In this document: positions 14,929-64,000 of the stretch, one piece after another
How the letters are laid out: each line of letters starts with the position of its first letter
How positions within the stretch are numbered: position 1 is the first letter of the stretch
Origin: Schmidtea polychroa
Taxonomy: Eukaryota
DNA: 64,000 nucleotides
Direction: 5' to 3'
Assembly: GCA_044892525.1 (NCBI GenBank)
Contig: CM097885.1
Span: 109,430,001 to 109,494,000 of the forward strand
Position numbers and translations under genes: made by a program
Notes under the pieces: generated by a model
The model's input: only the letters and a program-made list of their open reading frames with translations
What the model was told of the DNA's origin: nothing
The model's database searches: none

Positions 14929-15540
14929 TTAATAAAGCCCAAAATTGTTTAATTTTCTAAAAAATAAAATGGTAGCAAAATACCTTATCCTATATTGTCC
15001 TTCCTGAACAATTGAGAGAATAGCAAAAGAGTTGTTGTTTTATACTAATTTGAATTTAAATATTTCGAATAAATATAGTTCATCTATTTGTGTCAATAAT
15101 GATAAAATCACCGAAGTCCTCAAAATACAATCTAACGGAATCATATTTTCACAAATGATGTTAACAATTCCAAAAGTTACAAATTTTTTTCAATACTTGC
15201 ATATGTACAATATTTTTCAAAAATATAATAAATAAAAATTATATTACAATGAAATTTTATAATTTATGAAAACAAAGGCGATCAATGTCACTCATTCAAT
15301 TTGTCACTAATCGATACCTCTGTTACAGAAAATACTTAAGAGTTCTTTATTTGTCCAATATATTTTACTGCTTAGTCACACGTGTTGTAACAACGTAATC
15401 TAGCTTTCTAGATAGTTATTGAAGCCGAAAGGAATAAGCATTTATTTTTATTATTTAAAATTTTGATACTGGAGAAAAGAGTAACCAATCAAAGCAGAAA
15501 GAAATCTTTAAAAAAATTAATACATGTGAACAATAACAAA

Positions 15541-15546
15541 TTTATT
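15541..15546 (-). terminator. Candidate polyadenylation signal AATAAA of the giant-protein gene
   Basis: AATAAA on the minus strand about 75 nt after the stop. The context is AT-rich, so a chance match is likely. Confidence 0.3.
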
Positions 15547-15618
15547 TAAATTTCAATTTAGAGCGATTAAGGCTATATTATAGCAGAAAATTAAGAAAAA
15601 TATTTATAAATTTACCAT

Positions 15619-15769
15619 TTATTTATTATTTAATTTGTCTCTAGAACTCCTAATAATATTTGCAGTTTCTTCTAACAATTTTTTGGATTTTTGAATATCA
15701 AAATTAGATCTTCTGTATAATGATTGAGTGCTTTGTGACGGGGATAAATTTGTCCTTTGTGATACAGAC
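15619..15769 (-). CDS. Giant-protein gene, terminal exon (RSVSQRTNLSPSQSTQSLYRRSNFDIQKSKKLLEETANIIRSSRDKLNNK-stop)
   Basis: Acceptor TTTCAG at 15771-15770 after a 49-nt intron; 50 in-frame codons ending in TAA at 15621-15619. Confidence 0.8.
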
Positions 15770-15818
15770 CTGAAATAAATACTAGATCAGAAGAAAATTA
15801 TTAAAGCTCTTTTATCAC

Positions 15819-15886
15819 CTAAATGTTTGAAGGGGGGTGATATGTCTTTCTTTGTATTTTCGCCAAATTGAGGCAGGCTGTTTATT
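15819..15886 (-). CDS. Giant-protein gene, tail exon 5 (68 nt; NKQPASIWRKYKERHITPLQTF)
   Basis: Acceptor CCTTATAG at 15888-15887 after a 143-nt AT-rich intron; donor AG|GTGATA at 15819/15818; in frame. Confidence 0.75.
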
Positions 15887-16029
15887 CTATAAGGACATAA
15901 ACAATATGGTAATCATTATATTATTTTTGAACAATAAGATTTTATTATTAAATTAAAAATTATTTAAATTGCAAAACTTAAGTGTTATAAAAATTAAAAG
16001 AACAAATAAAATAAAGAAAAGTATCATAC

Positions 16030-16093
16030 TTCACTGTTTGTCCTATCGAAGGTCACCTTCTCAGTGGAAATTGAAGAAATAGATTTATTATAT
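16030..16093 (-). CDS. Giant-protein gene, tail exon 4 (64 nt; RYNKSISSISTEKVTFDRTNSE)
   Basis: Acceptor TTTAG at 16095-16094 after a 41-nt intron; donor GAA|GTATGA at 16030/16029. Confidence 0.8.
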
Positions 16094-16134
16094 CTAAATT
16101 CAAATAACAAAATATAAAAGGTAAAATAAAATAC

Positions 16135-16786
16135 CTAGAAAGGCGATTTCTAACATCAGAAATACGATTACGATGTTCTTGCAACTGTTTCTCAACATCA
16201 ACACGAGAAAGAGATGCAGAACTTAAAATAACTTCATTTTGCTTTTTTAATAAATCAAGAAAATGAAAAAGTTGAGATGGACCATTAGAATCAGGAAAAG
16301 GAGAAGAGATTCTTGAAGGATCGTTTTTTGAGATAGAAGCATTAGAAGATCGACGACTTGAGAAATAATTACTGAAATTATTCTCGAGAGATTCAAGCCT
16401 CAAATTAGCATTGTCAGTTACATGAAGCAAATGATCATTATCAAAGAAATGATCAGATTCGATTTCAACACGGGCTTGATTTTTGTCAAAAGCTGACGCA
16501 AAAGCGTCCGTTTGACCTTCTAAATATTTCAATTCCATTTCAAAGATATGCATCCAGTTAGAAGGTTTTTTAGAATTCAAATTCAAATTAGATTCTTCAT
16601 CTAAAGGCTGATATTGAGAAGGAAAAAGAGGTAGATCAGAGGAATTAAAATGAGAAAAAACATTGGAATCAGCATAATATCCGATTTCAGAAGATTTTTC
16701 AAAGTCAGAAATTGATTGATCATGTTGAGATTGAAACGAAATAGAAATATCATCGGTCAAATCATCAGAATGACTGTTAACATCAA
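16135..16786 (-). CDS. Giant-protein gene, tail exon 3 (652 nt; Ser/Asp-rich, with a coiled-coil-like LLKKQNE...RISDVRNRLSR segment)
   Basis: Corresponds to ORF 16053..16760. Acceptor TTTCTAG at 16788-16787 and donor AG|GTATTT at 16135/16134. Length is 2+648+2, which keeps the frame. Confidence 0.88.
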
Positions 16787-16825
16787 CTAGAAACGAAATA
16801 ATAAATTAAAATAAATAAAAATTAC

Positions 16826-16867
16826 TTCGAGAACTAGATGGAGAAAAGGAATCTAGTAATTTTCTAT
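16826..16867 (-). CDS. Giant-protein gene, tail exon 2 (42 nt; DRKLLDSFSPSSSR)
   Basis: Acceptor TTTTAG at 16869-16868, with an alternative in-frame AG 6 nt upstream at 16875-16874. Donor A|GTAATT at 16826/16825. The frame is preserved on both sides. Confidence 0.75.
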
Positions 16868-16919
16868 CTAAAACTAAAAAGTAAATAAAGAAAACGGAAG
16901 AAATCAAAAATAAACATAC

Positions 16920-17018
16920 CAATAGGCTGAACAATATTCAAAATATTAGGAGAAGGTTTAGAGTTTGATTCAGGGACAGAACCGACAGAATAATGACGAC
17001 CAAGTAAATGAACCGGAA
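16920..17018 (-). CDS. Giant-protein gene, tail exon 1 (99 nt, phase 1/1; VPVHLLGRHYSVGSVPESNSKPSPNILNIVQPI)
   Basis: Acceptor TTTTTTAG at 17020-17019 and donor G|GTATGT at 16920/16919. In frame with the giant exon across a 39-nt intron. Confidence 0.85.
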
Positions 17019-17057
17019 CTAAAAAAGAATTTAACAAACAAAAATAAAATTATATAC

Positions 17058-20000
17058 CAGAAAATTCAGGAACAATAATTTCTTCAAATTGATGAGGAAA
17101 AATAGAAGGATGATCAAAATTATCGATGGGGAACAATAATGTGGAATCTGGAACAATGGATTCTGAGATATCTTTGCACAATTTCCTTAATCTTTCAGCC
17201 TCTTCTTTATTCAATTCCAATTCCTTCGATTTGCAATCAACCACTTCTTGTAGTTTAGGAAGAACTGATTCCAATAAAGTTTTATTTGCTTTCCATTTGT
17301 TGGATCTTTCTGAGTCTGGCGTTTCATTGATTTTACTTTCAACTTTATCCATAGCCTTTGACAATTTCGATAAATCTTGTCCTTTCAATTTTATTTGATC
17401 ATTCTTTGAATTTTCCACTAATTCTTTCAAGATTGTTTCAATTGGTCGTCGACTATTTTCAATTTCATCATGTCGAGATCTTCTAATTCGTTCCGCAATA
17501 TCAGGAATGCTAGATTGAATTTGTACTGCTTCACATAAAATACCCATCAGAGGCTCATTAACAGTTGCGGTTAGTTTTACGAGATCTTTTCCCTCCGAAA
17601 CTTCTTTCAATAACATTTCTTCTAATTCAATCAGTTTCGATTCACTAATTTCATTTTTCAAAGCATCTTTAGCGACTTTTATTCCATCAAGTAAATTCTC
17701 AACGTCTTTCCTGTTCAATAGTTTCTCTTTATCACCTTCTTCGTCATCAAATAAACATTTAATTGCCTCCAATATTTTGTTACTATCCTCATCGCTATTA
17801 TCTAATCGCTTTTCACTCTTTATGCCTAATGCTTTTAATTGTTCACAAATAGATTTGTCAATTTTCACTTTAGATCCACTTTCTAAAGACCTGTTTAAAT
17901 CGTTTATAATTTCTTCCACAAATCTTCTTTCTTTTTCTCCAGTCTTTGATTTCGGAATCAATGATTTCATAATTTCCAAACTTTCAACTAGTTCTTTGCC
18001 TTTCAAGTTGTTCAATTCACCTTTCTCCAGAGTATCGCATAATAATTTCTGACCACTTTCAAGTCCTACTTTTCGTTCCATAGTTACTTCATCAATAATT
18101 TCGTCAACAATGTCTGCATTTCTAATTACTGTCGAATCTGGTACAATGGATTCTGAGATATCTTTGCACAATTTCCTTAATCTTTCAGCCTCTTCTTTAT
18201 TCAATTCCTTTTCCTTCGATTTGCAATCAATCACTTCTTGTAGTTTAGGAAGAACTGATTCCAATAAAGTTTTATTTGCTTTCCATTCGTTGGATCTTTC
18301 TGAGTCTGGCGTTTCATTGATTTTACTTTCAACTTTATCCATAGCCTTTGACAATTTCGATAAATCTTGTCCTTTCAATTTTATTTGATCATTCTTTGAA
18401 TTTTCCACTAATTCTTTCAAGATTGTTTCAATTGGTCGTCGACTATTTTCAATTTCATCATGTCGAGATCTTCTAATTCGTTCCGCAATATCAGGAATGC
18501 TAGATTGAATTTGTACAGCTTCACATAAAATACCCATCAGAGGCTCATTAACAGTTGCGGTTAGTTTTACGAGATCTTTTCCCTCCGAAACTTCTTTCAA
18601 TAACATTTCTTCTAATTCAATCAGTTTCGATTCACTAATTTCATTTTTCAAAGCATCTTTAGCGACTTTTATTCCATCAAGTAAATTCTCAACGTCTTTC
18701 CTGTTCAATAGTTTCTCTTTATCACCTTCTTCGTCATCAAATAAACATTTAATTGCCTCCAATATTTTGTTACTATCCTCATCGCTATTATCTAATCGCT
18801 TTTCACTCTTTATGCCTAATGCTTTTAATTGTTCACAAATAGATTTGTCAATTTTCACTTTAGATCCACTTTCTAAAGACCTGTTTAAATCGTTTATAAT
18901 TTCTTCCACAAATCTTCTTTCTTTTTCTCCAGTCTTTGATTTCGGAATCAATGATTTCATAATTTCCAAACTTTCAACTAGTTCTTTGCCTTTCAAGTTG
19001 TTCAATTCACCTTTCTCCAGAGCATCGCATAATAATTTCTGACCACTTTCAAGTCCTACTTTTCGTTCCATAGTTACTTCATCAATAATTTCGTCAACAA
19101 TGTCTGCATTTCTAATTACTGTCGAATCTGGTACAATGGATTCTGAGATATCTTTGCACAATTTCCTTAATCTTTCAGCCTCTTCTTTATTCAATTCCAA
19201 TTCCTTCGATTTGCAATCAATCACTTCTTGTAGTTTAGGAAGAACTGATTCCAATAGAGTTTTATTTGCTTTCCATTCGTTGGATCTTTCTGAGTCTGGC
19301 GTTTCATTGATTTTACTTTCAACTTTATCCATAGCCTTTGACAATTTCGATAAATCTTGTCCTTTCAATTTTATTTGATCATTCTTTGAATTTTCCACTA
19401 ATTCTTTCAAGATTGTTTCAATTGGTCGTCGACTATTTTCAATTTCATCATGTCGAGATCTTCTAATTCGTTCCGCAATATCAGGAATGCTAGATTGAAT
19501 TTGTACAGCTTCACATAAAATACCCATCAGAGGCTCATTAACAGTTGCGGTTAGTTTTACGAGATCTTTTCCCTCCGAAACTTCTTTCAATAACATTTCT
19601 TCTAATTCAATCAGTTTCGATTCACTAATTTCATTTTTCAAAGCATCTTTAGCGACTTTTATTCCATCAAGTAAATTCTCAACGTCTTTCCTGTTCAATA
19701 GTTTCTCTTTATCACCTTCTTCGTCATCAAATAAACATTTAATTGCCTCCAATATTTTGTTACTATCCTCATCGCTATTATCTAATCGCTTTTCACTCTT
19801 TATGCCTAATGCTTTTAATTGTTCACAAATAGATTTGTCAATTTTCACTTTAGATCCACTTTCTAAAGACCTGTTTAAATCGTTTATAATTTCTTCCACA
19901 AATCTTCTTTCTTTTTCTCCAGTCTTTGATTTCGGAATCAATGATTTCATAATTTCCAAACTTTCAACTAGTTCTTTGCCTTTCAAGTTGTTCAATTCAC

Positions 20001-23000
20001 CTTTCTCCAGAGCATCGCATAATAATTTCTGACCACTTTCAAGTCCTACTTTTCGTTCCATAGTTACTTCATCAATAATTTCGTCAACAATGTCTGCATT
20101 TCTAATTACTGTCGAATCTGGTACAATGGATTCTGAGATATCTTTGCACAATTTCCTTAATCTTTCAGCCTCTTCTTTATTCAATTCCAATTCCTTCGAT
20201 TTGCAATCAATCACTTCTTGTAGTTTAGGAAGAACTGATTCCAATAAAGTTTTATTTGCTTTCCATTCGTTGGATCTTTCTGAGTCTGGCGTTTCATTGA
20301 TTTTACTTTCAACTTTATCCATAGCCTTTGACAATTTCGATAAATCTTGTCCTTTCAATTTTATTTGATCATTCTTTGAATTTTCCACTAATTCTTTCAA
20401 GATTGTTTCAATTGGTCGTCGACTATTTTCAATTTCATCATGTCGAGATCTTCTAATTCGTTCCGCAATATCAGGAATGCTAGATTGAATTTGTACAGCT
20501 TCACATAAAATACCCATCAGAGGCTCATTAACAGTTGCGGTTAGTTTTACGAGATCTTTTCCCTCCGAAACTTCTTTCAATAACATTTCTTCTAATTCAA
20601 TCAGTTTCGATTCACTAATTTCATTTTTCAAAGCATCTTTAGCGACTTTTATTCCATCAAGTAAATTCTCAACGTCTTTCCTGTTCAATAGTTTCTCTTT
20701 ATCACCTTCTTCGTCATCAAATAAACATTTAATTGCCTCCAATATTTTGTTACTATCCTCATCGCTATTATCTAATCGCTTTTCACTCTTTATGCCTAAT
20801 GCTTTTAATTGTTCACAAATAGATTTGTCAATTTTCACTTTAGATCCACTTTCTAAAGACCTGTTTAAATCGTTTATAATTTCTTCCACAAATCTTCTTT
20901 CTTTTTCTCCAGTCTTTGATTTCGGAATCAATGATTTCATAATTTCCAAACTTTCAACTAGTTCTTTGCCTTTCAAGTTGTTCAATTCACCTTTCTCCAG
21001 AGCATCGCATAATAATTTCTGACCACTTTCAAGTCCTACTTTTCGTTCCATAGTTACTTCATCAATAATTTCGTCAACAATGTCTGCATTTCTAATTACT
21101 GTCGAATCTGGTACAATGGATTCTGAGATATCTTTGCACAATTTCCTTAATCTTTCAGCCTCTTCTTTATTCAATTCCAATTCCTTCGATTTGCAATCAA
21201 TCACTTCTTGTAGTTTAGGAAGAACTGATTCCAATAAAGTTTTATTTGCTTTCCATTCGTTGGATCTTTCTGAGTCTGGCGTTTCATTGATTTTACTTTC
21301 AACTTTATCCATAGCCTTTGACAATTTCGATAAATCTTGTCCTTTCAATTTTATTTGATCATTCTTTGAATTTTCCACTAATTCTTTCAAGATTGTTTCA
21401 ATTGGTCGTCGACTATTTTCAATTTCATCATGTCGAGATCTTCTAATTCGTTCCGCAATATCAGGAATGCTAGATTGAATTTGTACTGCTTCACATAAAA
21501 TACCCATCAGAGGCTCATTAACAGTTGCGGTTAGTTTTACGAGATCTTTTCCCTCCGAAACTTCTTTCAATAACATTTCTTCTAATTCAATCAGTTTCGA
21601 TTCACTAATTTCATTTTTCAAAGCATCTTTAGCGACTTTTATTCCATCAAGTAAATTCTCAACGTCTTTCCTGTTCAATAGTTTCTCTTTATCACCTTCT
21701 TCGTCATCAAATAAACATTTAATTGCCTCCAATATTTTGTTACTATCCTCATCGCTATTATCTAATCGCTTTTCACTCTTTATGCCTAATGCTTTTAATT
21801 GTTCACAAATAGATTTGTCAATTTTCACTTTAGATCCACTTTCTAAAGACCTGTTTAAATCGTTTATAATTTCTTCCACAAATCTTCTTTCTTTTTCTCC
21901 AGTCTTTGATTTCGGAATCAATGATTTCATAATTTCCAAACTTTCAACTAGTTCTTTGCCTTTCAAGTTGTTCAATTCACCTTTCTCCAGAGTATCGCAT
22001 AATAATTTCTGACCACTTTCAAGTCCTACTTTTCGTTCCATAGTTACTTCATCAATAATTTCGTCAACAATGTCTGCATTTCTAATTACTGTCGAATCTG
22101 GTACAATGGATTCTGAGATATCTTTGCACAATTTCCTTAATCTTTCAGCCTCTTCTTTATTCAATTCCAATTCCTTCGATTTGCAATCAATCACTTCTTG
22201 TAGTTTAGGAAGAACTGATTCCAATAAAGTTTTATTTGCTTTCCATTCGTTGGATCTTTCTGAGTCTGGCGTTTCATTGATTTTACTTTCAACTTTATCC
22301 ATAGCCTTTGACAATTTCGATAAATCTTGTCCTTTCAATTTTATTTGATCATTCTTTGAATTTTCCACTAATTCTTTCAAGATTGTTTCAATTGGTCGTC
22401 GACTATTTTCAATTTCATCATGTCGAGATCTTCTAATTCGTTCCGCAATATCAGGAATGCTAGATTGAATTTGTACAGCTTCACATAAAATACCCATCAG
22501 AGGCTCATTAACAGTTGCGGTTAGTTTTACGAGATCTTTTCCCTCCGAAACTTCTTTCAATAACATTTCTTCTAATTCAATCAGTTTCGATTCACTAATT
22601 TCATTTTTCAAAGCATCTTTAGCGACTTTTATTCCATCAAGTAAATTCTCAACGTCTTTCCTGTTCAATAGTTTCTCTTTATCACCTTCTTCGTCATCAA
22701 ATAAACATTTAATTGCCTCCAATATTTTGTTACTATCATCATCGCTATTATCTAATCGCTTTTCACTCTTTATGCCTAATGCTTTTAATTGTTCACAAAT
22801 AGATTTGTCAATTTTCACTTTAGATCCACTTTCTAAAGACCTGTTTAAATCGTTTATAATTTCTTCCACAAATCTTCTTTCTTTTTCTCCAGTCTTTGAT
22901 TTCGGAATCAATGATTTCATAATTTCCAAACTTTCAACTAGTTCTTTGCCTTTCAAGTTGTTCAATTCACCTTTCTCCAGAGCATCGCATAATAATTTCT

Positions 23001-26000
23001 GACCACTTTCAAGTCCTACTTTTCGTTCCATAGTTACTTCATCAATAATTTCGTCAACAATGTCTGCATTTCTAATTACTGTCGAATCTGGTACAATGGA
23101 TTCTGAGATATCTTTGCACAATTTCCTTAATCTTTCAGCCTCTTCTTTATTCAATTCCAATTCCTTCGATTTGCAATCAATCACTTCTTGTAGTTTAGGA
23201 AGAACTGATTCCAATAAAGTTTTATTTGCTTTCCATTCGTTGGATCTTTCTGAGTCTGGCGTTTCATTGATTTTACTTTCAACTTTATCCATAGCCTTTG
23301 ACAATTTCGATAAATCTTGTCCTTTCAATTTTATTTGATCATTCTTTGAATTTTCCACTAATTCTTTCAAGATTGTTTCAATTGGTCGTCGACTATTTTC
23401 AATTTCATCATGTCGAGATCTTCTAATTCGTTCCGCAATATCAGGAATGCTAGATTGAATTTGTACTGCTTCACATAAAATACCCATCAGAGGCTCATTA
23501 ACAGTTGCGGTTAGTTTTACGAGATCTTTTCCCTCCGAAACTTCTTTCAATAACATTTCTTCTAATTCAATCAGTTTCGATTCACTAATTTCATTTTTCA
23601 AAGCATCTTTAGCGACTTTTATTCCATCAAGTAAATTCTCAACGTCTTTCCTGTTCAATAGTTTCTCTTTATCACCTTCTTCGTCATCAAATAAACATTT
23701 AATTGCCTCCAATATTTTGTTACTATCCTCATCGCTATTATCTAATCGCTTTTCACTCTTTATGCCTAATGCTTTTAATTGTTCACAAATAGATTTGTCA
23801 ATTTTCACTTTAGATCCACTTTCTAAAGACCTGTTTAAATCGTTTATAATTTCTTCCACAAATCTTCTTTCCTTTTCTCCAGTCTTTGATTTCGGAATCA
23901 ATGATTTCATAATTTCCAAACTTTCAACTAGTTCTTTGCCTTTCAAGTTGTTCAATTCACCTTTCTCCAGAGCATCGCATAATAATTTCTGACCACTTTC
24001 AAGTCCTACTTTTCGTTCCATAGTTACTTCATCAATAATTTCGTCAACAATGTCTGCATTTCTAATTACTGTCGAATCTGGTACAATGGATTCTGAGATA
24101 TCTTTGCACAATTTCCATAATCTTTCAGCCTCTTCTTTATTCAATTCCAATTCCTTCCATTTGCAATCAATCACTTCTTGTAGTTTAGGAAGAACTGATT
24201 CCAATAGAGTTTTATTTGCTTTCCATTCGTTGGATCTTTCTGAGTCTGGCGTTTCATTGATTTTACTTTCAACTTTATCCATAGCCTTTGACAATTTCGA
24301 TAAATCTTGTCCTTTCAATTTTATTTGATCATTCTTTGAATTTTCCACTAATTCTTTCAAGATTGTTTCAATTGGTCGTCGACTATTTTCAATTTCATCA
24401 TGTCGAGATCTTCTAATTTGTTCCGCAATATCAGGAATGCTAGATTGAATTTGTACTGCTTCACATAAAATACCCATCAGAGGCTCATTAACAGTTGCGG
24501 TTAGTTTTACGAGATCTTTTCCCTCCGAAACTTCTTTCAATAACATTTCTTCTAATTCAATCAGTTTCGATTCACTAATTTCATTTTTCAAAGCATCTTT
24601 AGCGACTTTTATTCCATCAAGTAAATTCTCAACGTCTTTCCTGTTCAATAGTTTCTCTTTATCACCTTCTTCGTCATCAAATAAACATTTAATTGCCTCC
24701 AATATTTTGTTACTATCCTCATCGCTATTATCTAATCGCTTTTCACTCTTTATGCCTAATGCTTTTAATTGTTCACAAATAGATTTGTCAATTTTCACTT
24801 TAGATCCACTTTCTAAAGACCTGTTTAAATCGTTTATAATTTCTTCCACAAATCTTCTTTCTTTTTCTCCAGTCTTTGATTTCGGAATCAATGATTTCAT
24901 AATTTCCAAACTTTCAACTAGTTCTTTGCCTTTCAAGTTGTTCAATTCACCTTTCTCCAGAGCATCGCATAATAATTTCTGACCACTTTCAAGTCCTACT
25001 TTTCGTTCCATAGTTACTTCATCAATAATTTCGTCAACAATGTCTGCATTTCTAATTACTGTCGAATCTGGTACAATGGATTCTGAGATATCTTTGCACA
25101 ATTTCCTTAATCTTTCAGCCTCTTCTTTATTCAATTCCAATTCCTTCGATTTGCAATCAATCACTTCTTGTAGTTTAGGAAGAACTGATTCCAATAAAGT
25201 TTTATTTGCTTTCCATTCGTTGGATCTTTCTGAGTCTGGCGTTTCATTGATTTTACTTTCAACTTTATCCATAGCCTTTGACAATTTCGATAAATCTTGT
25301 CCTTTCAATTTTATTTGATCATTCTTTGAATTTTCCACTAATTCTTTCAAGATTGTTTCAATTGGTCGTCGACTATTTTCAATTTCATCATGTCGAGATC
25401 TTCTAATTCGTTCCGCAATATCAGGAATGCTAGATTGAATTTTTACTGCTTCACATAAAATACCCATCAGAGGCTCATTAACAGTTGCGGTTAGTTTTAC
25501 GAGATCTTTTCCCTCCGAAACTTCTTTCAATAACATTTCTTCTAATTCAATCAGTTTCGATTCACTAATTTCATTTTTCAAAGCATCTTTAGCGACTTTT
25601 ATTCCATCAAGTAAATTCTCAACGTCTTTCCTGTTCAATAGTTTCTCTTTATCACCTTCTTCGTCATCAAATAAACATTTAATTGCCTCCAATATTTTGT
25701 TACTATCCTCATCGCTATTATCTAATCGCTTTTCACTCTTTATGCCTAATGCTTTTAATTGTTCACAAATAGATTTGTCAATTTTCACTTTAGATCCACT
25801 TTCTAAAGACCTGTTTAAATCGTTTATAATTTCTTCCACAAATCTTCTTTCTTTTTCTCCAGTCTTTGATTTCGGAATCAATGATTTCATAATTTCCAAA
25901 CTTTCAACTAGTTCTTTGCCTTTCAAGTTGTTCAATTCACCTTTCTCCAGAGCATCGCATAATAATTTCTGACCACTTTCAAGTCCTACTTTTCGTTCCA

Positions 26001-53000: not shown

Positions 53001-56000
53001 ACAATTTCGATAAATCTTGTCCTTTCAATTTTATTTGATCATTCTTTGAATTTTCCACTAATTCTTTCAAGATTGTTTCAATTGGTCGTCGACTATTTTC
53101 AATTTCATCATGTCGAGATCTTCTAATTCGTTCCGCAATATCAGGAATGCTAGATTGAATTTGTACTGCTTCACATAAAATACCCATCAGAGGCTCATTA
53201 ACAGTTGCGGTTAGTTTTACGAGATCTTTTCCCTCCGAAACTTCTTTCAATAACATTTCTTCTAATTCAATCAGTTTCGATTCACTAATTTCATTTTTCA
53301 AAGCATCTTTAGCGACTTTTATTCCATCAAGTAAATTCTCAACGTCTTTCCTGTTCAATAGTTTCTCTTTATCACCTTCTTCGTCATCAAATAAACATTT
53401 AATTGCCTCCAATATTTTGTTACTATCCTCATCGCTATTATCTAATCGCTTTTCACTCTTTATGCCTAATGCTTTTAATTGTTCACAAATAGATTTGTCA
53501 ATTTTCACTTTAGATCCACTTTCTAAAGACCTGTTTAAATCGTTTATAATTTCTTCCACAAATCTTCTTTCTTTTTCTCCAGTCTTTGATTTCGGAATCA
53601 ATGATTTCATAATTTCCAAACTTTCAACTAGTTCTTTGCCTTTCAAGTTGTTCAATTCACCTTTCTCCAGAGCATCGCATAATAATTTCTGACCACTTTC
53701 AAGTCCTACTTTTCGTTCCATAGTTACTTCATCAATAATTTCGTCAACAATGTCTGCATTTCTAATTACTGTCGAATCTGGTACAATGGATTCTGAGATA
53801 TCTTTGCACAATTTCCTTAATCTTTCAGCCTCTTCTTTATTCAATTCCAATTCCTTCGATTTGCAATCAACCACTTCTTGTAGTTTAGGAAGAACTGATT
53901 CCAATAAAGTTTTATTTGCTTTCCATTCGTTGGATCTTTCTGAGTCTGGCGTTTCATTGATTTTACTTTCAACTTTATCCATAGCCTTTGACAATTTCGA
54001 TAAATCTTGTCCTTTCAATTTTATTTGATCATTCTTTGAATTTTCCACTAATTCTTTCAAGATTGTTTCAATTGGTCGTCGACTATTTTCAATTTCATCA
54101 TGTCGAGATCTTCTAATTCGTTCCGCAATATCAGGAATGCTAGATTGAATTTGTACTGCTTCACATAAAATACCCATCAGAGGCTCATTAACAGTTGCGG
54201 TTAGTTTTACGAGATCTTTTCCCTCCGAAACTTCTTTCAATAACATTTCTTCTAATTCAATCAGTTTCGATTCACTAATTTCATTTTTCAAAGCATCTTT
54301 AGCGACTTTTATTCCATCAAGTAAATTCTCAACGTCTTTCCTGTTCAATAGTTTCTCTTTATCACCTTCTTCGTCATCAAATAAACATTTAATTGCCTCC
54401 AATATTTTGTTACTATCCTCATCGCTATTATCTAATCGCTTTTCACTCTTTATGCCTAATGCTTTTAATTGTTCACAAATAGATTTGTCAATTTTCACTT
54501 TAGATCCACTTTCTAAAGACCTGTTTAAATCGTTTATAATTTCTTCCACAAATCTTCTTTCTTTTTCTCCAGTCTTTGATTTCGGAATCAATGATTTCAT
54601 AATTTCCAAACTTTCAACTAGTTCTTTGCCTTTCAAGTTGTTCAATTCACCTTTCTCCAGAGCATCGCATAATAATTTCTGACCACTTTCAAGTCCTACT
54701 TTTCGTTCCATAGTTACTTCATCAATAATTTCGTCAACAATGTCTGCATTTCTAATTACTGTCGAATCTGGTACAATGGATTCTGAGATATCTTTGCACA
54801 ATTTCCTTAATCTTTCAGCCTCTTCTTTATTCAATTCCAATTCCTTCGATTTGCAATCAATCACTTCTTGTAGTTTAGGAAGAACTGATTCCAATAAAGT
54901 TTTATTTGCTTTCCATTCGTTGGATCTTTCTGAGTCTGGCGTTTCATTGATTTTACTTTCAACTTTATCCATAGCCTTTGACAATTTCGATAAATCTTGT
55001 CCTTTCAATTTTATTTGATCATTCTTTGAATTTTCCACTAATTCTTTCAAGATTGTTTCAATTGGTCGTCGACTATTTTCAATTTCATCATGTCGAGATC
55101 TTCTAATTCGTTCCGCAATATCAGGAATGCTAGATTGAATTTGTACTGCTTCACATAAAATACCCATCAGAGGCTCATTAACAGTTGCGGTTAGTTTTAC
55201 GAGATCTTTTCCCTCCGAAACTTCTTTCAATAACATTTCTTCTAATTCAATCAGTTTCGATTCACTAATTTCATTTTTCAAAGCATCTTTAGCGACTTTT
55301 ATTCCATCAAGTAAATTCTCAACGTCTTTCCTGTTCAATAGTTTCTCTTTATCACCTTCTTCGTCATCAAATAAACATTTAATTGCCTCCAATATTTTGT
55401 TACTATCCTCATCGCTATTATCTAATCGCTTTTCACTCTTTATGCCTAATGCTTTTAATTGTTCACAAATAGATTTGTCAATTTTCACTTTAGATCCACT
55501 TTCTAAAGACCTGTTTAAATCGTTTATAATTTCTTCCACAAATCTTCTTTCTTTTTCTCCAGTCTTTGATTTCGGAATCAATGATTTCATAATTTCCAAA
55601 CTTTCAACTAGTTCTTTGCCTTTCAAGTTGTTCAATTCACCTTTCTCCAGAGCATCGCATAATAATTTCTGACCACTTTCAAGTCCTACTTTTCGTTCCA
55701 TAGTTACTTCATCAATAATTTCGTCAACAATGTCTGCATTTCTAATTACTGTCGAATCTGGTACAATGGATTCTGAGATATCTTTGCACAATTTCCTTAA
55801 TCTTTCAGCCTCTTCTTTATTCAATTCCAATTCCTTCGATTTGCAATCAACCACTTCTTGTAGTTTAGGAAGAACTGATTCCAATAAAGTTTTATTTGCT
55901 TTCCATTCGTTGGATCTTTCTGAGTCTGGCGTTTCATTGATTTTACTTTCAACTTTATCCATAGCCTTTGACAATTTCGATAAATCTTGTCCTTTCAATT

Positions 56001-59000
56001 TTATTTGATCATTCTTTGAATTTTCCACTAATTCTTTCAAGATTGTTTCAATTGGTCGTCGACTATTTTCAATTTCATCATGTCGAGATCTTCTAATTCG
56101 TTCCGCAATATCAGGAATGCTAGATTGAATTTGTACTGCTTCACATAAAATACCCATCAGAGGCTCATTAACAGTTGCGGTTAGTTTTACGAGATCTTTT
56201 CCCTCCGAAACTTCTTTCAATAACATTTCTTCTAATTCAATCAGTTTCGATTCACTAATTTCATTTTTCAAAGCATCTTTAGCGACTTTTATTCCATCAA
56301 GTAAATTCTCAACGTCTTTCCTGTTCAATAGTTTCTCTTTATCACCTTCTTCGTCATCAAATAAACATTTAATTGCCTCCAATATTTTGTTACTATCCTC
56401 ATCGCTATTATCTAATCGCTTTTCACTCTTTATGCCTAATGCTTTTAATTGTTCACAAATAGATTTGTCAATTTTCACTTTAGATCCACTTTCTAAAGAC
56501 CTGTTTAAATCGTTTATAATTTCTTCCACAAATCTTCTTTCTTTTTCTCCAGTCTTTGATTTCGGAATCAATGATTTCATAATTTCCAAACTTTCAACTA
56601 GTTCTTTGCCTTTCAAGTTGTTCAATTCACCTTTCTCCAGAGCATCGCATAATAATTTCTGACCACTTTCAAGTCCTACTTTTCGTTCCATAGTTACTTC
56701 ATCAATAATTTCGTCAACAATGTCTGCATTTCTAATTACTGTCGAATCTGGTACAATGGATTCTGAGATATCTTTGCACAATTTCCTTAATCTTTCAGCC
56801 TCTTCTTTATTCAATTCCAATTCCTTCGATTTGCAATCAACCACTTCTTGTAGTTTAGGAAGAACTGATGCCAATAAAGTTTTATTTGCTTTCCATTCGT
56901 TGGATCTTTCTGAGTCTGGCGTTTCATTGATTTTACTTTCAACTTTATCCATAGCCTTTGACAATTTCGATAAATCTTGTCCTTTCAATTTTATTTGATC
57001 ATTCTTTGAATTTTCCACTAATTCTTTCAAGATTGTTTCAATTGGTCGTCGACTATTTTCAATTTCATCATGTCGAGATCTTCTAATTCGTTCCGCAATA
57101 TCAGGAATGCTAGATTGAATTTGTACTGCTTCACATAAAATACCCATCAGAGGCTCATTAACAGTTGCGGTTAGTTTTACGAGATCTTTTCCCTCCGAAA
57201 CTTCTTTCAATAACATTTCTTCTAATTCAATCAGTTTCGATTCACTAATTTCATTTTTCAAAGCATCTTTAGCGACTTTTATTCCATCAAGTAAATTCTC
57301 AACGTCTTTCCTGTTCAATAGTTTCTCTTTATCACCTTCTTCGTCATCAAATAAACATTTAATTGCCTCCAATATTTTGTTACTATCCTCATCGCTATTA
57401 TCTAATCGCTTTTCACTCTTTATGCCTAATGCTTTTAATTGTTCACAAATAGATTTGTCAATTTTCACTTTAGATCCACTTTCTAAAGACCTGTTTAAAT
57501 CGTTTATAATTTCTTCCACAAATCTTCTTTCTTTTTCTCCAGTCTTTGATTTCGGAATCAATGATTTCATAATTTCCAAACTTTCAACTAGTTCTTTGCC
57601 TTTCAAGTTGTTCAATTCACCTTTCTCCAGAGCATCGCATAATAATTTCTGACCACTTTCAAGTCCTACTTTTCGTTCCATAGTTACTTCATCAATAATT
57701 TCGTCAACAATGTCTGCATTTCTAATTACTGTCGAATCTGGTACAATGGATTCTGAGATATCTTTGCACAATTTCCTTAATCTTTCAGCCTCTTCTTTAT
57801 TCAATTCCAATTCCTTCGATTTGCAATCAATCACTTCTTGTAGTTTAGGAAGAACTGATTCCAATAAAGTTTTATTTGCTTTCCATTCGTTGGATCTTTC
57901 TGAGTCTGGCGTTTCATTGATTTTACTTTCAACTTTATCCATAGCCTTTGACAATTTCGATAAATCTTGTCCTTTCAATTTTATTTGATCATTCTTTGAA
58001 TTTTCCACTAATTCTTTCAAGATTGTTTCAATTGGTCGTCGACTATTTTCAATTTCATCATGTCGAGATCTTCTAATTCGTTCCGCAATATCAGGAATGC
58101 TAGATTGAATTTGTACTGCTTCACATAAAATACCCATCAGAGGCTCATTAACAGTTGCGGTTAGTTTTACGAGATCTTTTCCCTCCGAAACTTCTTTCAA
58201 TAACATTTCTTCTAATTCAATCAGTTTCGATTCACTAATTTCATTTTTCAAAGCATCTTTAGCGACTTTTATTCCATCAAGTAAATTCTCAACGTCTTTC
58301 CTGTTCAATAGTTTCTCTTTATCACCTTCTTCGTCATCAAATAAACATTTAATTGCCTCCAATATTTTGTTACTATCCTCATCGCTATTATCTAATCGCT
58401 TTTCACTCTTTATGCCTAATGCTTTTAATTGTTCACAAATAGATTTGTCAATTTTCACTTTAGATCCACTTTCTAAAGACCTGTTTAAATCGTTTATAAT
58501 TTCTTCCACAAATCTTCTTTCTTTTTCTCCAGTCTTTGATTTCGGAATCAATGATTTCATAATTTCCAAACTTTCAACTAGTTCTTTGCCTTTCAAGTTG
58601 TTCAATTCACCTTTCTCCAGAGCATCGCATAATAATTTCTGACCACTTTCAAGTCCTACTTTTCGTTCCATAGTTACTTCATCAATAATTTCGTCAACAA
58701 TGTCTGCATTTCTAATTACTGTCGAATCTGGTACAATGGATTCTGAGATATCTTTGCACAATTTCCTTAATCTTTCAGCCTCTTCTTTATTCAATTCCAA
58801 TTCCTTCGATTTGCAATCAATCACTTCTTGTAGTTTAGGAAGAACTGATTCCAATAAAGTTTTATTTGCTTTCCATTCGTTGGATCTTTCTGAGTCTGGC
58901 GTTTCATTGATTTTACTTTCAACTTTATCCATAGCCTTTGACAATTTCGATAAATCTTGTCCTTTCAATTTTATTTGATCATTCTTTGAATTTTCCACTA

Positions 59001-62000
59001 ATTCTTTCAAGATTGTTTCAATTGGTCGTCGACTATTTTCAATTTCATCATGTCGAGATCTTCTAATTCGTTCCGCAATATCAGGAATGCTAGATTGAAT
59101 TTGTACTGCTTCACATAAAATACCCATCAGAGGCTCATTAACAGTTGCGGTTAGTTTTACGAGATCTTTTCCCTCCGAAACTTCTTTCAATAACATTTCT
59201 TCTAATTCAATCAGTTTCGATTCACTAATTTCATTTTTCAAAGCATCTTTAGCGACTTTTATTCCATCAAGTAAATTCTCAACGTCTTTCCTGTTCAATA
59301 GTTTCTCTTTATCACCTTCTTCGTCATCAAATAAACATTTAATTGCCTCCAATATTTTGTTACTATCCTCATCGCTATTATCTAATCGCTTTTCACTCTT
59401 TATGCCTAATGCTTTTAATTGTTCACAAATAGATTTGTCAATTTTCACTTTAGATCCACTTTCTAAAGACCTGTTTAAATCGTTTATAATTTCTTCCACA
59501 AATCTTCTTTCTTTTTCTCCAGTCTTTGATTTCGGAATCAATGATTTCATAATTTCCAAACTTTCAACTAGTTCTTTGCCTTTCAAGTTGTTCAATTCAC
59601 CTTTCTCCAGAGCATCGCATAATAATTTCTGACCACTTTCAAGTCCTACTTTTCGTTCCATAGTTACTTCATCAATAATTTCGTCAACAATGTCTGCATT
59701 TCTAATTACTGTCGAATCTGGTACAATGGATTCTGAGATATCTTTGCACAATTTCCTTAATCTTTCAGCCTCTTCTTTATTCAATTCCAATTCCTTCGAT
59801 TTGCAATCAATCACTTCTTGTAGTTTAGGAAGAACTGATTCCAATAAAGTTTTATTTGCTTTCCATTCGTTGGATCTTTCTGAGTCTGGCGTTTCATTGA
59901 TTTTACTTTCAACTTTATCCATAGCCTTTGACAATTTCGATAAATCTTGTCCTTTCAATTTTATTTGATCATTCTTTGAATTTTCCACTAATTCTTTCAA
60001 GATTGTTTCAATTGGTCGTCGACTATTTTCAATTTCATCATGTCGAGATCTTCTAATTCGTTCCGCAATATCAGGAATGCTAGATTGAATTTGTACTGCT
60101 TCACATAAAATACCCATCAGAGGCTCATTAACAGTTGCGGTTAGTTTTACGAGATCTTTTCCCTCCGAAACTTCTTTCAATAACATTTCTTCTAATTCAA
60201 TCAGTTTCGATTCACTAATTTCATTTTTCAAAGCATCTTTAGCGACTTTTATTCCATCAAGTAAATTCTCAACGTCTTTCCTGTTCAATAGTTTCTCTTT
60301 ATCACCTTCTTCGTCATCAAATAAACATTTAATTGCCTCCAATATTTTGTTACTATCCTCATCGCTATTATCTAATCGCTTTTCACTCTTTATGCCTAAT
60401 GCTTTTAATTGTTCACAAATAGATTTGTCAATTTTCACTTTAGATCCACTTTCTAAAGACCTGTTTAAATCGTTTATAATTTCTTCCACAAATCTTCTTT
60501 CTTTTTCTCCAGTCTTTGATTTCGGAATCAATGATTTCATAATTTCCAAACTTTCAACTAGTTCTTTGCCTTTCAAGTTGTTCAATTCACCTTTCTCCAG
60601 AGCATCGCATAATAATTTCTGACCACTTTCAAGTCCTACTTTTCGTTCCATAGTTACTTCATCAATAATTTCGTCAACAATGTCTGCATTTCTAATTACT
60701 GTCGAATCTGGTACAATGGATTCTGAGATATCTTTGCACAATTTCCTTAATCTTTCAGCCTCTTCTTTATTCAATTCCAATTCCTTCGATTTGCAATCAA
60801 TCACTTCTTGTAGTTTAGGAAGAACTGATTCAAATAAAGTTTTATTTGCTTTCCATTCGTTGGATCTTTCTGAGTCTGGCGTTTCATTGATTTTACTTTC
60901 AACTTTATCCATAGCCTTTGACAATTTCGATAAATCTTGTCCTTTCAATTTTATTTGATCATTCTTTGAATTTTCCACTAATTCTTTCAAGATTGTTTCA
61001 ATTGGTCGTCGACTATTTTCAATTTCATCATGTCGAGATCTTCTAATTCGTTCCGCAATATCAGGAATGCTAGATTGAATTTGTACTGCTTCACATAAAA
61101 TACCCATCAGAGGCTCATTAACAGTTGCGGTTAGTTTTACGAGATCTTTTCCCTCCGAAACTTCTTTCAATAACATTTCTTCTAATTCAATCAGTTTCGA
61201 TTCACTAATTTCATTTTTCAAAGCATCTTTAGCGACTTTTATTCCATCAAGTAAATTCTCAACGTCTTTCCTGTTCAATAGTTTCTCTTTATCACCTTCT
61301 TCGTCATCAAATAAACATTTAATTGCCTCCAATATTTTGTTACTATCCTCATCGCTATTATCTAATCGCTTTTCACTCTTTATGCCTAATGCTTTTAATT
61401 GTTCACAAATAGATTTGTCAATTTTCACTTTAGATCCACTTTCTAAAGACCTGTTTAAATCGTTTATAATTTCTTCCACAAATCTTCTTTCTTTTTCTCC
61501 AGTCTTTGATTTCGGAATCAATGATTTCATAATTTCCAAACTTTCAACTAGTTCTTTGCCTTTCAAGTTGTTCAATTCACCTTTCTCCAGAGCATCGCAT
61601 AATAATTTCTGACCACTTTCAAGTCCTACTTTTCGTTCCATAGTTACTTCATCAATAATTTCGTCAACAATGTCTGCATTTCTAATTACTGTCGAATCTG
61701 GTACAATGGATTCTGAGATATCTTTGCACAATTTCCTTAATCTTTCAGCCTCTTCTTTATTCAATTCCAATTCCTTCGATTTGCAATCAATCACTTCTTG
61801 TAGTTTAGGAAGAACTGATTCCAATAAAGTTTTATTTGCTTTCCATTCGTTGGATCTTTCTGAGTCTGGCGTTTCATTGATTTTACTTTCAACTTTATCC
61901 ATAGCCTTTGACAATTTCGATAAATCTTGTCCTTTCAATTTTATTTGATCATTCTTTGAATTTTCCACTAATTCTTTCAAGATTGTTTCAATTGGTCGTC

Positions 62001-64000
62001 GACTATTTTCAATTTCATCATGTCGAGATCTTCTAATTCGTTCCGCAATATCAGGAATGCTAGATTGAATTTGTACTGCTTCACATAAAATACCCATCAG
62101 AGGCTCATTAACAGTTGCGGTTAGTTTTACGAGATCTTTTCCCTCCGAAACTTCTTTCAATAACATTTCTTCTAATTCAATCAGTTTCGATTCACTAATT
62201 TCATTTTTCAAAGCATCTTTAGCGACTTTTATTCCATCAAGTAAATTCTCAACGTCTTTCCTGTTCAATAGTTTCTCTTTATCACCTTCTTCGTCATCAA
62301 ATAAACATTTAATTGCCTCCAATATTTTGTTACTATCCTCATCGCTATTATCTAATCGCTTTTCACTCTTTATGCCTAATGCTTTTAATTGTTCACAAAT
62401 AGATTTGTCAATTTTCACTTTAGATCCACTTTCTAAAGACCTGTTTAAATCGTTTATAATTTCTTCCACAAATCTTCTTTCTTTTTCTCCAGTCTTTGAT
62501 TTCGGAATCAATGATTTCATAATTTCCAAACTTTCAACTAGTTCTTTGCCTTTCAAGTTGTTCAATTCACCTTTCTCCAGAGCATCGCATAATAATTTCT
62601 GACCACTTTCAAGTCCTACTTTTCGTTCCATAGTTACTTCATCAATAATTTCGTCAACAATGTCTGCATTTCTAATTACTGTCGAATCTGGTACAATGGA
62701 TTCTGAGATATCTTTGCACAATTTCCTTAATCTTTCAGCCTCTTCTTTATTCAATTCCAATTCCTTCGATTTGCAATCAATCACTTCTTGTAGTTTAGGA
62801 AGAACTGATTCAAATAAAGTTTTATTTGCTTTCCATTCGTTGAATCTTTCTGAGTCTGGCGTTTCATTGATTTTACTTTCAACTTTATCCATAGCCTTTG
62901 ACAATTTCGATAAATCTTGTCCTTTCAATTTTATTTGATCATTCTTTGAATTTTCCACTAATTCTTTCAAGATTGTTTCAATTGGTCGTCGACTATTTTC
63001 AATTTCATCATGTCGAGATCTTCTAATTCGTTCCGCAATATCAGGAATGCTAGATTGAATTTGTACTGCTTCACATAAAATACCCATCAGAGGCTCATTA
63101 ACAGTTGCGGTTAGTTTTACGAGATCTTTTCCCTCCGAAACTTCTTTCAATAACATTTCTTCTAATTCAATCAGTTTCGATTCACTAATTTCATTTTTCA
63201 AAGCATCTTTAGCGACTTTTATTCCATCAAGTAAATTCTCAACGTCTTTCCTGTTCAATAGTTTCTCTTTATCACCTTCTTCGTCATCAAATAAACATTT
63301 AATTGCCTCCAATATTTTGTTACTATCCTCATCGCTATTATCTAATCGCTTTTCACTCTTTATGCCTAATGCTTTTAATTGTTCACAAATAGATTTGTCA
63401 ATTTTCACTTTAGATCCACTTTCTAAAGACCTGTTTAAATCGTTTATAATTTCTTCCACAAATCTTCTTTCTTTTTCTCCAGTCTTTGATTTCGGAATCA
63501 ATGATTTCATAATTTCCAAACTTTCAACTAGTTCTTTGCCTTTCAAGTTGTTCAATTCACCTTTCTCCAGAGCATCGCATAATAATTTCTGACCACTTTC
63601 AAGTCCTACTTTTCGTTCCATAGTTACTTCATCAATAATTTCGTCAACAATGTCTGCATTTCTAATTACTGTCGAATCTGGTACAATGGATTCTGAGATA
63701 TCTTTGCACAATTTCCTTAATCTTTCAGCCTCTTCTTTATTCAATTCCAATTCCTTCGATTTGCAATCAATCACTTCTTGTAGTTTAGGAAGAACTGATT
63801 CAAATAAAGTTTTATTTGCTTTCCATTCGTTGGATCTTTCTGAGTCTGGCGTTTCATTGATTTTACTTTCAACTTTATCCATAGCCTTTGACAATTTCGA
63901 TAAATCTTGTCCTTTCAATTTTATTTGATCATTCTTTGAATTTTCCACTAATTCTTTCAAGATTGTTTCAATTGGTCGTCGACTATTTTCAATTTCATCA
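17058..64000 (-). CDS. Giant coding exon (partial, open at the window edge) of an unrecognised giant alpha-helical repeat protein; about 47.3 x 330-aa repeats
   Basis: One stop-free frame from 63999 down to 17050. It continues upstream of the track start (63960 is an internal TTG). At the end, TCT G|GTATAT gives a 5' splice donor at 17058/17057, just before the apparent TAA, and splicing there joins in frame to the downstream exons. The repeat is E/K/L/S/D-rich with amphipathic helical patterning. Confidence 0.93.
17142..64000 (-). repeat. Coding tandem repeat array, 990-bp unit, about 47.3 copies in the window, near-identical
   Basis: Exact 990-bp periodicity: the antisense ORFs recur at 18110+990k. 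Only scattered substitutions and no indels were seen. The array breaks at about 17142, where PDST|VIRNAD becomes PDST|LLFPID. Confidence 0.99.

Follow-up and report, generated by a model that had tools for sequence, protein, structure and literature searches.

On the minus strand of a 64,000-nucleotide stretch of the Schmidtea polychroa genome, we identified a transcribed and spliced protein-coding gene with a single coding exon of 80.4 kb, in which the assembly repeats a 330-codon module 79 times. The stretch, hereafter the window, corresponds to C1:109,430,001-109,494,000 (C1 is contig CM097885.1 of assembly GCA_044892525.1), in a genome of 781 Mb with 32% GC and four large scaffolds. Positions are those of the window unless stated otherwise. 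We consider it likely that this is a genuine, expressed giant-repeat gene whose product forms a helical rod or tether in the cytoplasm.

A single giant coding exon

The scan of the window for open reading frames (ORF) yielded a frame at 17053-63999 that is free of stops over 46,947 bp; the runner-up open stretch measures 900 bp. We read the next 90 kb and could follow the frame past the window edge to a total of 80,418 bp, i.e., 26,806 codons. The chance of finding 330 open codons given the unit's own composition is about 1.6e-14 (a stop is expected every 11 codons), and each of the other five frames is interrupted by 3 to 49 stops per unit. Between 18 kb and the window end, the GC skew and the AT skew both stay level and show a strong strand bias. 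A six-frame search of the genome with the unit matched 79 in-frame copies, all of them within the same 26,806-codon frame, and the array sequence contains no N and no assembly gap.

The exon opens at a strong splice acceptor (tttttttag/GT, phase 1), nine bases past the last in-frame stop, and its first methionine is found about 170 open codons downstream of this acceptor. Hence, the start codon and other coding exons lie upstream. A unique N-terminal part of 712 residues precedes the array in the same frame. From the acceptor to the stop codon there are around 27,160 codons, for a predicted mass of 3.08 MDa and an isoelectric point (pI) of 5.0. We infer that this giant frame is translated over its full length.

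The first-pass annotation, made from the letters of the window, had described a single stop-free, indel-free coding exon of at least 46.9 kb with about 47.3 copies of a 990-bp unit, which agrees with the length given above and with the 47.35 indel-free copies that we counted in the window. Its estimate of at least 16,000 residues and at least 1.8 MDa holds as a lower bound but understates the size of the product. It had also proposed to extend the window in search of the N-terminal exons; the extension reached the 712-residue part and the acceptor, and beyond these it gave only two candidate 5' ends, both putative. The start of the giant exon at an acceptor, the kinesin motor encoded upstream of it and the lack of an independent confirmation of the copy number are points that the annotation missed.

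Transcription and splicing into a unique tail

Two runs from two studies with the same organism label, X1 and X2, behave like RNA, whereas run X12 behaves like DNA, with contigs that pass straight across the introns. The contigs of X1 and X2 leave the intergenic positions 15000-15603 uncovered. They reveal six joints, which without exception have GT..AG borders when read on the minus strand (17058/17018, 16920/16873, 16826/16786, 16135/16093, 16030/15886 and 15819/15769), which delimit introns of 39, 46, 39, 41, 143 and 49 nt, in this order. The reading frame is preserved across all six introns. The joint that closes the giant exon was predicted at 17058/17018 in the first-pass annotation and was found exactly there in both runs. 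The transcription and splicing of the array into the tail, also part of that annotation, are seen in contigs that run from the tail into the last repeat: records 2 and 17 bridge 17173..17058 to the next exon, and record 17, from X2, starts at the end of the last repeat (17173) and crosses two introns. The tail has 387 residues past the last repeat, of which 359 are encoded by the spliced exons, close to the 360 previously estimated. RNA contigs span nearly every position of the unit and contain no internal joints. The word depth of the repeat exceeds that of the tail by 15x in X1 and 18.5x in X2.

The fourth exon of the tail is rich in Ser, Asn and Asp, and a search of the genome with it finds only itself. 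The fifth intron (15887-16029) is the only long one, at 143 nt against 39-49 nt for the other five. The stop codon TAA (15621-15619) is overlapped by an AATAAA motif. Around the 3' end of the gene (15607-15635), X12 lacks 3 bases at 15614 and has several contigs that diverge, and one X1 contig continues past 15616 with 44 letters unlike the assembly. The probable cause is variation between strains or haplotypes in the 3' untranslated region.

A further run, X6 (organism B), has repeat contigs with a depth of up to about 40,000 at 17114-19500. Poly-T loose ends and a Nextera adaptor suggest that oligo-dT primed internally, at A-rich sites of an RNA present in very large amounts. Many of the X6 contigs are only 90-99% identical to the array, a hint that the array is more heterogeneous in that strain or species.

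A homogenised array that keeps its frame

Within the window, the array is 99.6% identical to itself at a lag of 990 bp, against approximately 30% when the lag is set to 989 or 991 bp. It covers 78,210 bp in total, i.e., 79.0 units. Tandem Repeats Finder, for which the longest period was 500, misses it for that reason. The natural phase of the unit is DIVDEIIDEV...IVPDSTVIRNA: the array begins with DIVDEIIDEV and ends with ...IVPDST, so that five residues are missing to complete the last unit.

The copies are on average 99.7% identical to the consensus. The 79 units fall into 44 distinct sequences and show 63 distinct variants, with no indel and no stop. Given the observed mutation spectrum, 4.6 of the 63 variants were expected to be stops (P = 0.006), and synonymous variants numbered 19 where 13.5 were expected (P = 0.054). 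The constraint on the amino acids is weak and that on the frame is clear. Variant patterns over several units recur, e.g., units 46-63 read A B C, A B C C, A B C C C, and so on, which is the signature of unequal exchange in blocks. The array seems to derive, by amplification in frame, from an internal stretch of an older exon. Non-coding satellite DNA would be expected to carry stops and indels and to be free in its unit length, whereas the unit measured here is 3 x 330 nt and keeps its frame; the open frame, the unique flanks that share it and the splicing to the tail exons do not fit such a satellite.

We searched the unit for shorter internal repeats. Sub-repeats of 55-60 residues were not supported, as the circular-offset z reached 2.07 at best, against a 95% null of 3.46. 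The best local score was 43 for a 99% null of 39, which is marginal over 15 comparisons.

The six-frame search of the genome gave a single match besides the 79 copies. This stray piece (C3:66411561-66411692, plus strand) has 125 bp at 88% DNA identity and encodes a 44-residue fragment. Since it crosses the junction between two units (VIRNA/DIV), the array was already tandem when this copy left. The piece lies within an 84-codon open frame, and two contigs, of 884 nt in the RNA-like X1 and 2,369 nt in the DNA-like X12, match it and not the array.

How many copies?

Consensus 31-mers occur 49 to 79 times in the assembly, with a median of 77. The longest perfect shifted self-match of the array is 6.6 kb, so reads longer than 7 kb place uniquely, and we found no duplicated block of the length of a read. 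In X12 the depth is 17.8 and 11.4 on unique contigs and 687-736 on repeat contigs, which implies 39-65 copies by a crude measure, since it comes from a contig set whose library type is unstated. These data support tens of copies and not the exact number of 79; the shortfall may stem from polymorphism, from a biased library or from an assembly that is somewhat inflated.

In a stronger version of the last of these, the assembly would inflate the copy number of a much shorter array. The depth ratio, lower than an assembled copy number that k-mers put at about 70-79, fits this idea. Yet, more than half of the assembled units are distinct (44/79), the array lacks blocks duplicated at the scale of a read, and depth across a contig set is an imprecise guide. 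We therefore regard substantial inflation as unlikely. Even 39 copies would make an exon of 41 kb and a protein of approximately 14,000 residues.

Composition, predicted fold and relatives

The unit is rich in Glu, Lys, Leu, Ser, Ile and Asp, with a net charge of -15. Cys, Pro and Gly occur 6, 7 and 12 times, aromatic residues are scarce at 3, and the hydrophobic residues recur with a period of 3.4-3.7. AlphaFold2 (AF2) modelled the whole unit as 13 helices, 5-51 residues long and joined by short loops, with a predicted local distance difference test (pLDDT) score of 50.7; residues 185-325 alone reached 55.5. Searches by fold are not meaningful with models of such low pLDDT. The unit is hence predicted, and no more firmly than these models allow, to be an all-alpha chain of amphipathic helices.

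Pfam profiles gave only spurious matches on three consecutive units, with scores inflated by the repetition. Spectrin repeats were among the families without a Pfam match in the unit, and the all-alpha models are too low in pLDDT to judge this fold. The unit found no match among the sequences of the PDB, and neither the unit nor the N-terminal part had a usable match in the ESM atlas. An exhaustive HMMER search with the unit against 1.84 billion representative proteins returned two matches, P0001 and P0002. The latter is a TPR-kinase that we rejected as an artefact of helical repeats. P0001 is the sole credible relative of the unit (132 ungapped residues, 30% identity, library E-value 5.7e-6). 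It comes from JGI metagenome 3300013315, where it is encoded at 427-2001 of a 2,071-bp contig. Its ends resemble the protease and the integrase of BEL/Pao elements, and the segment homologous to the unit occupies the place of the reverse transcriptase, which is lacking; around 80 Pol frames of the present genome match the integrase end at approximately 50% identity. P0001 looks like a fragment of a gene captured by a retroelement in a distant relative. The match is evidence that the module has evolved as a protein sequence. Two metagenome scans gave no other relatives of the unit or of P0001.

The unique parts were equally without relatives. Word-indexed protein searches found no homologues of the N-terminal part (run also with a longer reference) or of the tail, searches of the genome showed both to be single-copy, without paralogues, and neither the N-terminal part nor the tail exon matched Pfam. 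Neither of them resembles the unit, and we discarded the possibility that they are decayed repeat copies. As far as sequence comparison goes, the unit, the N-terminal part and the tail are orphans. The first-pass annotation, which did not recognise the repeat, is in line with these searches, and the new giant-protein family that it had put forward as a possibility is a fair description of the protein.

We found no signal peptide and no hydrophobic segment in the known parts of the protein. The tail is rich in Ser and probably disordered. It lacks cysteines, and its highest hydropathy over 19 residues is 0.81, which implies the absence of a transmembrane segment; with no Pfam match, this bears out the earlier statement that it has no transmembrane, KASH or Cys-rich segment. 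The N-terminal part opens with a polybasic patch.

Two candidate 5' ends

The RNA contigs were mapped over the 3' end of the gene, and the candidate 5' ends are described here from the genome. The closer candidate is a mini-exon found 3 kb upstream of the giant exon, at 36.47 kb past the window end: ATG GGC TTG ACT TCG TCA TGT ACA CGT G/gtaaat. It has an A at position -3 and a phase 1 donor, compatible with the acceptor of the giant exon, and the encoded MGLTSSCTR would be joined in frame to GKKHRKKRIRQKKK. The predicted start, MGLTSSCTR-G-KKHRKKRIRQKKK, follows the consensus for myristoylation and continues with the polybasic patch. We estimate the probability that such a candidate occurs by chance to be roughly 0.1-0.2. 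A lipid-anchored start at MGLTSSC is a real possibility that falls somewhat short of even chances, and it would not exclude an isoform fused to a kinesin.

The second candidate is a kinesin motor encoded on the same strand, 54.6-77.6 kb past the window end and 21-44 kb upstream of the giant exon. Its PF00225 pieces are collinear and, from 73 to 54.6 kb past the window end, cover positions 58-327 of the profile. The characteristic motifs are intact (P-loop GMTGTGKT, SSRSH, DLAG/SER); the features of the kinesin superfamily, i.e., PF00225, the P-loop, switch I and switch II, are thus all present, and only in these upstream exons. One of the motor pieces scores best with KIF13B, KIF14 and KIF1A, with a slight preference for kinesin-3 structures. 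The P-loop, some 73 kb past the window end, departs from the usual GQTG(S/A)GK(T/S). Together with their transposon-laden introns, the motor exons take up more than 23 kb, and ORFs matching Integrase_H2C2 lie on the minus strand between motor and giant exon, 37.8-39.1 kb past the window end.

If the giant exon is the tail of this kinesin, the protein would comprise the motor, linkers, the 712-residue part, the 79 repeats and the tail. We see this as an open prospect, if one slightly more doubtful than not. It overlaps with the reading of the gene as an expressed tether and could coexist with an isoform without motor. The collinearity and integrity of the motor argue for it, as does the fact that no other long tail ORF follows the motor and that the giant exon is internal and entered in phase 1. 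Between the motor and the giant exon there is also a 181-codon ORF, at 45.8-46.3 kb past the window end, where 0.08 such ORFs are expected by chance, with 56% of its words in X1; it is probably expressed. Against the fusion, this ORF closes with a true TAA, which may be no more than the end of the kinesin, and the phase 2 of its terminal donor is no direct fit to the phase 1 acceptor; a phase-matched chain of intermediate ORFs leading to the giant exon was looked for, and no simple chain was obtained. Furthermore, the motor and the giant exon are separated by 21 kb with retroelement insertions. The architecture is not that of STARD9: Pfam revealed no START domain in the tail, and none of the 17 six-frame matches of FHA (PF00498) in the genome is at this locus, although an FHA split by an intron could escape such a search.

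A bolder version can be stated tentatively, as something we would not expect to hold but take seriously: a titin-scale kinesin of more than 27,500 residues, with a kinesin-3-like motor and the 80.4-kb exon, together with a lipid-anchored, motor-less isoform transcribed from an internal promoter. If true, it would be the largest kinesin and would carry the longest animal coding exon found by our search, and it could span micrometres from a microtubule to a membrane or an organelle.

Nature of the product

We propose that an existing exon was enlarged by the in-frame tandem amplification of a 330-codon segment, now in 79 copies, and that unequal crossing-over or gene conversion keeps these nearly identical. 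The product would be an acidic (pI 5), all-alpha protein with the 712-residue N-terminal part, 79 helical modules and the 387-residue tail. Most probably it acts in the cytoplasm as a rod, tether or spacer of micrometre length, anchored at its N-terminus. The rod would measure about 1.2 µm if the modules were spectrin-like bundles, and up to 3.9 µm as a continuous helix. It could be anchored to a membrane by the myristoylated and polybasic start, to microtubules by the kinesin motor, or to both by the use of alternative promoters. We read the protein as an intracellular structural one because it shows no signal for secretion or membrane spanning, because its amphipathic helices are acidic and because its candidate N-termini are of cytoplasmic type; the location in the cytoplasm, the role as a tether and either of the 5' ends are what we infer. 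The first-pass annotation had suggested an intracellular elastic or spacer filament. Its intracellular part is plausible, given known parts devoid of signal peptide and transmembrane segment, and nothing that we found supports the elastic one.

Several observations weigh against this reading. The DNA depth of X12 points to 39-65 copies where 79 were assembled. The ratio of non-synonymous to synonymous substitution rates (dN/dS) among copies is around 0.66, a value that fits a fresh homogenisation and also a neutral expansion. Contigs cannot place all 80 kb, or the 79 units, in one mRNA. With the low AF2 confidence (51 and 55.5), the fold, and with it the geometry of the rod, is tentative. Finally, the unit, the N-terminal part and the tail have no homologues in other sequenced animals, and conservation cannot be called upon to support a function.

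Some of these observations would also be expected of a recent, effectively neutral runaway expansion, in which the array is transcribed, the animal either does not make the full-length product or has no need of it, and length varies freely among individuals. Copies that are 99.7% identical, satellite-like patterns of higher order, the dN/dS value, the lower copy number suggested by the DNA of another sample and the lack of orthologues are all compatible with it. But neutrality poorly accounts for 78 kb without a single stop or indel (the stops alone give P = 0.006), for a unit whose length is a multiple of three or for unique flanks that are both in its frame. The RNA is abundant, the stray copy at 88% identity indicates that the array is not brand new, and the protein relative at 30% identity that the module is older than its homogenisation. 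We thus find a neutral expansion improbable.

The architecture, i.e., a huge exon of homogenised repeats with small unique ends, is also that of secreted structural or adhesive materials such as the Balbiani ring proteins or the spidroins, and the very high apparent abundance of RNA in X6 would suit such a product. Yet, signal peptides and hydrophobic segments are missing from every known part, and both candidate 5' ends are of cytoplasmic type. The sequence, amphipathic and rich in Glu, Lys, Leu and Ile, with 6 Cys per 330 residues, does not resemble that of silks, mucins or Balbiani ring proteins. The known parts hence show neither the signal peptide nor the Pfam terminal domains nor the composition of secreted repeat proteins. 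We hold secretion to be very improbable.

Comparison with other giant proteins

The closest functional analogue of the proposed cytoplasmic tether or cross-linker is ANC-1, the Caenorhabditis elegans orthologue of Nesprin-1/2. It has 6 repeats of 903 residues with almost 100% nucleotide identity that are predicted to be helical (PMC8139857). These repeats cannot be recognised as spectrin repeats from their sequence, and they are needed to hold organelles in place (PMC8139857). Both proteins are giants with a core of large, nearly identical helical repeats, the one described here being cytoplasmic by our interpretation, and this analogy leads us to prefer a tether or spacer with an N-terminal anchor. 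They differ in that we count 79 repeats of 330 residues, without sequence similarity to those of ANC-1. Nor do we find the domains of the Nesprin/ANC-1 family: the N-terminal part has no CH match in Pfam, and the tail, by Pfam and hydropathy, has neither a KASH domain nor a transmembrane segment.

AHNAK, epiplakin and filaggrin are intracellular proteins encoded by single giant exons of around 12-18 kb, with recognisable, diverged repeats of 100 to several hundred residues. The gene described here departs from them in its 80.4-kb exon, its 99.7% identical copies and its unrecognised module. The longest coding exons usually cited are those of TTN (around 17 kb) and MUC16 (around 22 kb). Titin itself is encoded by hundreds of exons and is made of Ig and Fn3 domains, in contrast to what is here essentially one exon of helical repeats. 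The predicted 3.08 MDa is in the range of titin, which exceeds 3 MDa (PMC12680273). If the assembly and the translation hold, the protein would be among the largest of animals after titin, and its exon would be approximately four times the longest usually cited.

Some genes for secreted materials have a similar architecture. The Balbiani ring genes have around 40 kb and four introns (PMC4192438), and the aggregate spidroin AgSp1 has a coding sequence of 42,270 bp in two exons of similar size, around 21 kb (PMC6553539). They share with the present gene the very long exon of homogenised repeats, the short unique ends and the few small introns, but their products are secreted, silk- or glue-like, whereas here the module is a 330-residue amphipathic helical one. 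In length, the giant exon equals about two complete Balbiani ring genes or about four AgSp1 exons.

STARD9 has a large central exon. The likeness to STARD9, a very large kinesin (PMC10203878), and to kinesin-3 consists in the motor encoded upstream on the same strand, with a putative link from the motor to the repeats. Our search of the literature turned up no kinesin with such a tandem-repeat tail, and no description of this gene. One pipeline for planarian annotation drops transcripts with "excessively long exons" (10.1101/2025.04.16.649076); such filtering may account for the absence of the gene from the literature. Giant repeat proteins encoded by giant exons are a known kind; the novelty here resides in the module and the scale, and possibly in the motor. 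In its concerted evolution the array behaves like a satellite while bound to a reading frame, and it is a clear example of this combination. Planarians are models of regeneration in which RNA interference and in situ hybridisation are routine, which makes the function of the repeat protein directly testable.

Coordinates and neighbouring sequence

Table 1. Features of the giant-repeat gene, listed in the direction of transcription (window positions, except where C1 is given).
Feature	Position	Strand	Description and evidence
Giant coding exon	C1:109,527,460 (33,460 bases past window end) to window 17058	minus	80,403 bp; acceptor and RNA-shown donor
Giant exon, part in the window	17058..64000	minus	Stop-free frame; donor 17058 from RNA joints
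Tandem array of 990-bp (330-codon) units	17125..64000 in window	minus	47.35 of 79.0 units; lag-990 identity
Unique 3' end of giant exon, about 28 codons	17058..17140	minus	LLFPIDNFDHPSIFPHQFEEIIVPEFS; translation, RNA bridge to next exon
Tail intron 1, 39 nt	17019..17057	minus	GTATAT..TTTTAG; joint 17018/17058 in X1 and X2
Tail exon 2, 99 nt	16920..17018	minus	RNA joints on both sides
Tail exon 3, 48 nt	16826..16873	minus	RNA joints 16873/16920 and 16786/16826
Tail exon 4, 652 nt	16135..16786	minus	216 whole codons; RNA contig X1 record 1
Tail exon 5, 64 nt	16030..16093	minus	RNA joints 16093/16135 and 15886/16030
Tail exon 6, 68 nt	15819..15886	minus	RNA joints; cut of the last joint taken 2 places further right
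Last exon, coding part	15619..15769	minus	Stop TAA 15621-15619; RNA contigs end at about 15616

Elsewhere in the window, a decayed hAT transposase is found on the plus strand at 3245-5198. It is split in three ORFs, with a BED zinc finger at 3245-3529 and a hAT dimerisation region at 4428-5198.

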